DNA of 64,000 nt, from the IMG/VR virus record IMGVR_UViG_3300032053_000002, positions 62,001 to 126,000 of that record; one strand, 5' to 3'. Positions 16,670 to 16,780 of the stretch are shown here, piece by piece. Made by a program: the position numbers and the translations under genes. Position 1 is the first letter of the stretch. The number at the start of each line of letters is the position of its first letter. Below the pieces are notes generated by a model. It did not search any database, was not told the DNA's origin, and saw only the letters and a list, made by a program, of their open reading frames with translations.

Positions 16670-16780
16670 ATGCCGACGACGGGAGTGGAATTCCCGCTTA
16701 CGTGTTCGCCTCGTCCCTGATTGGGACGATAACCCTGACAATTCGCGTAAGCCTCAAATCTCCACTGTCAGGACCGGCAT
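16670..16780 (-). ncRNA. Unidentified pseudoknotted tRNA-like RNA
   Basis: ATGCCGG/TCGGCAT, CCTGACA/TGTCAGG, TCGTCCC/GGGACGA and GCGGGA/TCCCGT stems. Confidence 0.65.

Follow-up and report, generated by a model that had tools for sequence, protein, structure and literature searches.

Y RNAs and the Ro60 protein are found in animals, many bacteria and some mycobacteriophages, and their function is understood in few species. The stem-bulge RNAs of nematodes (RF01656) are regarded as Y RNA homologues. Small RNA genes of another kind lie among the tRNA genes of bacteriophage T4, and their products, rnaC and rnaD, are stable RNAs processed from a tRNA precursor. On the 5′ strand of a Y RNA, a bulged C is followed by GA(A), and this strand is the one that is mainly contacted by Ro60 (Chen et al. 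2014, PMC4201824; bioRxiv 10.1101/312249).

Here we describe a 111-nt structured element from an uncultivated jumbo phage of a sediment metagenome (292,723 bp, or 292.7 kb; 35% G+C; ~91% complete). The window, by which we mean the whole 64,000-nt stretch of DNA that was analysed, comprises bases 62001-126000 of the IMG/VR phage record, and the element occupies window 16670..16780 on the minus strand, with nt 1 at 16780 and nt 111 at 16670 (Table 1). ARAGORN finds 45 tRNAs and a tmRNA, every one on the minus strand. The tmRNA lies at genome positions 36140-36489 (-) and specifies the tag GNYSLAYAA; an amber suppressor tRNA(CUA) is present at window 12629-12702 (-), and a tRNA with a four-base anticodon (CAGA) at 19704-19779 (-).

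Table 1. Coordinates of the element's helices and motifs and of the surrounding genes (element nt count from 1 to 111; window positions count from the first base of the window).
Feature	Element nt	Window position	Strand	Remarks
H1 AUGCCGG/UCGGCAU	1-7/105-111		-	outer stem; one G.U
H2 CCUGACA/UGUCAGG	9-15/41-47	16734..16772	-	alternative hairpin with 25-nt loop; 'D-like' arm of the initial annotation; pair probability 0.16
H3 (A)GUGGAG/UUCCAC(U)	15-21/91-97		-	pair probability 0.76
H4 5′ strand GCUUACG	29-35	16746..16752	-	directly 5′ of the bulged-C/GAA signature; pair probability 0.84
H4 3′ strand CGUAAGC	79-85	16696..16702	-	pair probability 0.84
H5 UCGUCCC/GGGACGA	52-58/64-70	16711..16729	-	apical hairpin, loop AAUCA; pair probability 1.00
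H6 (G)CGGGA-AUUCCAC-UCCCG(U)	85-89/97-101	16680..16696	-	alternative hairpin; 'T-like' arm of the initial annotation; pair probability 0.16
Outer stem, 5′ strand		16760..16780	-	H1 nt 1-7; UCC bulge inside GGUCCUGA nt 6-13; H3 AGUGGAG nt 15-21
Outer stem, 3′ strand		16670..16690	-	UUCCACU nt 91-97, bulge CCC, GUCG, H1 partner UCGGCAU nt 105-111
Signature C-GAA-N5-AGGGUUAUC	36-53	16728..16745	-	reads C-GAA-UUGUC-AGGGUUAUC; C36 in the place of the bulged C
tRNA-Ile(UAU)		16586..16658	-	11 nt 3′ of the element; spacer AGUUUUUUAUA
Canonical Y RNA		21488..~21572	-	between tRNA-Thr and tRNA-Pro; R2 24.4 bits, E 8.5e-4
Canonical small Y RNA		16152..~16214	-	between tRNA-Pro and tRNA-His; R2 22.6 bits, E 0.0024
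Canonical Y RNA		4153..4212	-	6 nt after tRNA-Met; R2 19.7 bits, E 0.012
Y RNA candidate		4309..4369	-	R2 14.3 bits, E 0.24
Y RNA candidate		4872..4975	-	R2 10.7 bits, E 1.8
YrlA-type Y RNA		3994..4141	-	1 kb upstream of rsr; RF02553 22.3 bits (gathering score 69), R3 14 bits
Ro60/Rsr orthologue (rsr)		1331..3019	-	full-length; TROVE E 4e-36, vWA_Ro60 E 4e-59; presumed protein partner

The element occurs once in the 292.7-kb genome and stands out from it by composition, with ~56% G+C against 35%. On the plus strand its G.U pairs become A-C mismatches and the minimum free energy (MFE) is weaker (-41.5 kcal/mol, compared with -45.1 kcal/mol on the minus strand), which points to the minus strand, that of all 45 tRNA genes, as the RNA strand. 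Its placement ahead of tRNA-Ile(UAU), as given in the initial annotation, was borne out, with an 11-nt gap between them. The accompanying statement that it comes first in its transcript found no support: a 68-aa ORF on the same strand ends, by its stop codon, 24 nt 5′ of the element, no promoter or terminator is predicted between the two, and scans around the element gave nothing usable. The view of the element as a discrete, highly structured RNA-gene candidate that lies on the tRNA strand and in a tRNA-type slot is supported.

All six complementarities named earlier are present on the minus strand (H1 to H6). The element has eight stems of 7 bp in which no more than one pair is G.U, against an average of 1.5 in 1000 dinucleotide shuffles (P 0.009); for perfect 6-bp stems the corresponding figures are eight and 1.3 (P 0.005). 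The MFE (z -3.25) was equalled by none of 200 shuffles. The G+C content, the z-score and the stem count argue for a structure that is under selection. In the MFE structure, H1, H3, H4 and H5 form a nested imperfect rod, which dominates the ensemble (0.76-1.00). The earlier claim of competition between pairings holds for H3 and H4 against H2 and H6, but the double pseudoknot that had been read from them is not required, because the rod accommodates H3 and H4 (0.76 and 0.84) in nested form together with H1 and H5, and H2 and H6 reach only 0.16. The idea of a switch survives in part. When a cloverleaf is enforced, the best fold (-42.8 kcal/mol) lies just 2.3 kcal/mol above the rod, so that a switch or a pseudoknot is possible between two nearly isoenergetic folds, but nothing in the element demands either.

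Of all the explanations considered, the least likely is the one from which this analysis departed, namely that the element is a compact, double-pseudoknotted, tRNA-like switching RNA, perhaps self-cleaving in the manner of the HDV ribozyme or able to be aminoacylated. We judge this very improbable, although H2 and H6 can join the rod solely as pseudoknots, the nested folds differ little in energy, the GGCGAA that follows H5 resembles J4/2 of HDV, and theta (HDV-like) ribozymes are known to flank phage tRNAs (PMC10879173). Mapped by hand onto the HDV-like/theta order P1-P2-P3/L3-P1′-P4-J4/2(C)-P2′, the helices of the element come in an unsuitable order. Taking H2 as P1 and H4 as P2 leaves 5 nt for P3 and L3, and taking H3 as P2 gives a P3 of three A-U pairs, an L3 of 13 nt and a catalytic C that is not first in J4/2. 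Rfam ribozyme models gave no match to the element at E<=10; it lacks both a CCA and an anticodon loop of 7 nt and is not called as a tRNA.

The likeness to tRNA failed more generally, in ARAGORN, in the Rfam tRNA model and in a deletion scan. With introns allowed, ARAGORN called no tRNA on the element at thresholds down to 80%, and at 70% (-ps70) it made one spurious call. A tRNA interrupted by an intron or another insertion was rejected on the basis of ~4000 deletions of 15-65 nt, none of which yields a tRNA; in the positive control, an insertion-bearing tRNA at window 19950-20089, 623 deletions did. The control is a tRNA-Ile(GAU)-like gene (-) that carries no annotation and, according to ARAGORN -i, is interrupted at position 31/32 by ~55 nt; this insertion contains a weak Y-RNA-like motif, ACGGGUCG...AUGUUAUCG (11.2 bits with model R3, described below). 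In the element, the would-be anticodon loop has 5 nt and lacks U33/R37, the would-be T loop, AUUCCAC, is out of register with UUCRANY, and no CCA is present. tRNA-Sec and tRNA-Arg were likewise rejected, with ARAGORN variants and the deletion scan. Standard tools call no tRNA-Arg in this phage, and a weak tRNA-Arg(CCG) with an aberrant D arm appears at 20990-21085 (-) at a relaxed ARAGORN threshold only. An Rfam scan, proposed at the outset as a check, returned no family at E<=10, even with the search limited to 127 nt; this includes Y_RNA (RF00019), sbRNA (RF01656) and YrlA (RF02553). SRP RNA, 6S RNA, riboswitches and ribozyme families thus have no Rfam support, and RF00019 found nothing in the whole phage genome.

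The phage encodes a Ro60/Rsr orthologue on the strand of the element and 13.6 kb downstream of it. Its nearest named relatives, at ~50% identity, are from Chloroflexi MAGs, and its closest relatives, at 62-67%, are on large uncultivated contigs (up to 309 kb) that keep the tRNA-Met/rsr synteny; the Rsr of the 309-kb relative (L114) is 64% identical. Genes for Thg1 and RNase T lie near rsr in relatives, and a conserved manA-like block is found between tRNA-Met and rsr (L108, L111 upstream of rsr). A partial manA RNA (RF01745) with a 182-nt insertion is present in the window at 4432-4769 (-), at 34.3 bits.

In each of two of the Chloroflexi MAGs, rsr is closely preceded by three small RNA genes. 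Among these genes is one that passes RF01656 (45 bits, gathering score 38) and scores 23.7 bits with the Y_RNA model. Their consensus is CGGG(C/U)-C-G(A/G/U), 8-10 nt, GGGUUA(U/G)C and a 3′ end UUG(C/U)CCG, in which the second C is bulged. In the Ardenticatenaceae MAG (JACKBT010000005.1; L125 101-3946), ~22 tRNA genes precede the three Y-RNA-like genes that lie directly upstream of rsr, the RF01656 match being one of the three, and the contig may be a prophage or a phage-like island; on the second Chloroflexi contig, the Y-RNA-like genes are at L126 3636-3926.

A covariance model built solely from the Chloroflexi Y-RNA-like sequences upstream of rsr (R2) matches five places in the window (Table 1), and the three strongest matches occupy gaps directly flanked by tRNAs. 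With a second model, R3, five members were confirmed in the phage genome, and more were found in the relatives L114 and L111. The lower helix covaries in 3/8 pairs among independent R3 matches, which is supportive rather than decisive since the alignment was fitted to R3. The phage Y RNAs are 60-104 nt long, resemble those of animals and nematodes (GAGC-C-GAA ... GGUUAUC ... UUGYUC) and are interleaved with tRNA genes, from which the canonical members are separated by 0-15 nt; none of them reaches an Rfam threshold. A further Y RNA is possible at ~5226-5363 (-). In the YrlA-type RNA upstream of rsr, the Ro-binding helix CGAGC-C-GA/UUGUUCG encloses a canonical T arm, a stem-loop and a D arm.

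We propose, with doubt and confidence in about equal measure, that the element is a diverged, stem-extended derivative of this small Y-RNA family. Such a derivative probably still works like a Y RNA. MAFFT aligned element nt 29-53 to the 5′ half of the Y RNAs, and the element carries on its 5′ strand the family signature, C-GAA followed after 5-9 nt by (G)GGUUAUC. The pattern CGAA-N5-6-A[GC]GGTTATC has four matches in the genome, all on the minus strand, namely the element and three Y RNA genes; in first-order random genomes of 292.7 kb the expectation is 0.05, although the P value is partly post hoc because the signature was noticed after an alignment that included the element. The 7 nt that precede the signature are the 5′ strand of H4, which places H4 at the position of the Ro-binding lower helix. 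In the family this helix is a perfect or near-perfect 6-bp stem that ends before the bulged C, and H4 consists of seven Watson-Crick pairs followed by C36. The core so delimited (nt 29-85, 57 nt) is similar in size to the 60-62-nt Y RNAs of the phage. The proposal also fits the gene order. The 309-kb relative has a canonical member (L114 1172-1251; 30.6 bits, E 6e-6) 4 nt upstream of its tRNA-Ile(UAU) (1256-1327), and the element is the positional counterpart of this gene; its own spacer is comparable to the spacers of 2-12 nt that separate adjacent Y-RNA and tRNA genes in the array.

Other properties set the element apart from the family. Neither R2 nor R3 matched it in the window at E<=10, and when it was searched alone it scored at most 3.8 bits, compared with 52-57 bits for training members and 17-31 bits for independent members. 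The conserved 3′ UUG, which forms a G.U and an A-U pair above the bulge, is missing. The element has C77 and A78 instead; C77 is the sole possible partner of G37, and C36 and A78 are left in an internal loop. In the DNA, H4 is moreover internal, flanked by 28 and 26 bases that pair together, where family members form the lower helix from their own 5′ and 3′ ends. Because the UUG is absent, the helix is buried, the models reject the sequence and the signature is post hoc, we do not file the element as a member of the family.

The same properties could indicate a decaying or chimeric Y RNA copy from the tRNA-Ile slot that does not bind Rsr and has no function. The phage holds several canonical Y RNAs besides the element, which may therefore be a redundant or decaying copy; in relatives, the tRNA-Ile slot is still occupied by a canonical gene. 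The family models give no more than 3.8 bits, and the Ro-binding helix has lost its 3′ half. Against this, one would expect a gene that decays in a genome of 35% G+C to shed both G+C and pairings, and the element retains 56% G+C and a z of -3.25, exceeds its relatives in the number and length of perfect helices and shows no change across four assemblies. On balance we consider decay unlikely.

No homologue of the whole element was found in any collection searched. blastn against GenBank phages gave nothing, short-word blastn against all collected sequences gave nothing, and exact-pattern scans of IMG/VR and GTDB genomes gave chance matches in coding DNA only. A single-sequence covariance model of the element (R1) recovered nothing from relatives, whether close or distant, nor from the tRNA arrays of G004, G005 and L114, which were searched with filters off; the homologue search that had been suggested earlier thus produced no homologue, and hence no compensatory changes were seen. 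At the level of strains, the element shows zero differences among four independent assemblies from different sediment samples. A variant strain contig ends 37 nt short of the element, and a single weak joint of 16612 to 16792 gave no interpretable signal. For the upstream 68-aa ORF, a single relative is on record (85% identity), and the relatives of a downstream 82-aa ORF are not syntenic.

It is also conceivable, at a probability slightly below that of decay, that the element is a stable RNA in its own right, encoded in the tRNA cluster and without any relation to Y RNAs, either like T4 rnaC and rnaD or as a tRNA-derived scaffold with another partner, and that the Y-RNA motifs are coincidental. 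The T4 genes likewise adjoin a tRNA gene, that for tRNA-Arg, at 1-6 nt; the array contains other aberrant tRNA-like genes; and the D-loop-like AGUGGAGA and the arm GCGGG..CCCGU of the element resemble pieces of a tRNA. In the related genome G005, a 114-nt RNA that combines an initiator-tRNA acceptor and ACCA with a non-tRNA interior lies 5 nt upstream of tRNA-Ile(UAU). Against coincidence, a 13-base signature at the family spacing next to a correctly placed helix is improbable by chance, no tRNA model or deletion variant fits, and there is no sequence similarity to rnaC or rnaD. A relationship to the T4 RNAs was in fact rejected for want of any sequence or structural similarity, alike as the placement is.

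Further RNA candidates were observed in G004 and G005, whose major capsid protein is ~57% identical to that of this phage. The G005 RNA just mentioned (L098 8666-8778 (-)) has an A+T-rich interior, and G004 has a normal tRNA-fMet in its place. In both genomes, a 92-94-nt tRNA-Ile(UAU) is followed by a conserved element of ~90 nt (L095 10030-10132 (-) and L098 8466-8566 (-)) with a terminal stem, a canonical T arm, a hairpin and a D-like arm in a YrlA-like order, for which neither Rfam nor R3 gave a match. G004 also carries a GOLLD RNA (RF02032, 212 bits) with an embedded tRNA at L095 13263-13725 (-), and a tmRNA in its tRNA array.

Finally, the element might be no stable RNA but a cis-acting processing or insulating stem, such as an RNase III-type site or a weak terminator, that separates the upstream mRNA from tRNA-Ile. 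An imperfect rod of ~45 bp with bulges, located between an ORF and a tRNA and followed by U6, could be read in this way. The rod is much more complex than terminators are, 12 nt separate the U run from the end of the closest hairpin, the scan found no terminator, and a cis-acting stem leaves the internal Y-RNA signature unexplained; we therefore regard this as improbable, a shade more so than a stand-alone RNA.

Returning to the Y-RNA derivative, we can outline how it might be made and used. The element would be transcribed together with the tRNA array, and RNase P cleavage at tRNA-Ile would fix the 3′ side of the RNA. Canonical Y RNAs are bracketed by tRNAs at 0-15 nt, so that tRNA processing enzymes can set their ends. 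Because the upstream neighbour of the element is an ORF and not a tRNA, we propose a role for the outer H1/H3 stem: nt 1-28 and 86-111 would pair through H1 and H3, extending the stem into the imperfect rod, and the closed terminal stem might shield the ends or act as a processing stalk. The phage Rsr would then be bound through the bulged helix, and the RNA, like other Y RNAs, could serve as a tether or gate for RNA decay and repair during infection.

A variation on this proposal is a two-storey Y RNA, in which the inner Ro site (H4/C36/GAA) is joined by a second, metazoan-like site in the outer stem. The outer GGUCCUGA, with its bulged UCC, is close to the GGUCCGA contacted by Xenopus Ro60, and the upper helix, AGUGGA/UCCACU, has a 5′ strand, GACAGUGGA, that matches the corresponding strand of a Chloroflexi Y RNA (L125 3660-3731) in every base. 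Initially we took GGUCCUGA in the outer stem to be the Ro site itself; GGTCCNGA occurs three times in the genome, where ~8 are expected, and the idea is kept solely in the two-storey reading, which we rate as doubtful at best and unlikely on the whole. Were it true, the RNA could hold two Rsr rings, or it could be a precursor that yields a 57-nt Y RNA once its outer stem has been cut, in a place where the 5′ end is not set by a flanking tRNA. The literature that we examined describes no Y RNA of either arrangement.

This phage combines Rsr with at least five compact Y RNAs like those of animals and a YrlA-type RNA, amid 45 tRNAs, a tmRNA and RNA-repair genes. Genes of the latter type encode a T4 Rnl1-like RNA ligase (window 36018-37193 (-)), an HD + AAA_33 kinase/phosphatase-like protein (34108-35115 (-)) and a Pol-beta-type nucleotidyltransferase (11659-12381 (-)). 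Binding of the element to Rsr, if it takes place, would reveal the extent of divergence that the Ro-binding module tolerates and a way in which a Y RNA can mature without flanking tRNAs. Otherwise the element would be an orphan structured RNA from a single phage population. More broadly, the gaps in phage tRNA arrays are a productive place for finding Ro60 partners.

Among known systems, the closest comparison is with the Y RNAs bound by Ro60/Rsr (metazoan Y RNA, RF00019; nematode sbRNA, RF01656; Deinococcus Yrn1/Yrn2; and Salmonella YrlB), with which the element shares the bulged-C/GA(A) stem followed by the GGGUUAUC block, a variable apical module, a length within ~60-130 nt and a genome that holds several Y RNAs. 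It differs from them in that its candidate Ro-binding helix is internal and wrapped by 28 + 26 paired bases, in the lack of the 3′ UUG, in its rejection by every covariance model (Rfam, R2 and R3) and in its position within the tRNA array, 13.6 kb from rsr. With YrlA (RF02553) it has in common an Rsr-encoding genome and tRNA neighbours, whereas YrlA has canonical arms in the order T, acceptor-like stem, D, and the element has neither arm and gives nothing with RF02553. The T4 species 1 and 2 RNAs (rnaC and rnaD) are also small (119-139 nt) and arranged in tandem with tRNA genes, 1-6 nt apart; a T arm and an acceptor-like stem form the end of rnaC, and the T4 RNAs differ from the element in sequence and structure, as T4 does from this phage in being without Ro60. 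A tRNA or an intron-bearing pre-tRNA would share the 7-bp closing stem, a G+C content like that of the neighbouring tRNAs and a GG loop complementary to a UUCC loop, but would differ in the anticodon loop (5 nt in the element's apical loop, without U33/R37), the register of the T loop and the CCA. Theta ribozymes resemble the element in having a tRNA neighbour in a suppressor-tRNA phage, possible crossing helices and a CGAA after a hairpin, but they lie 3′ of tRNAs and measure ~50-70 nt, whereas the helix order of the element has no P3/L3 and matches no such model (PMC10879173).
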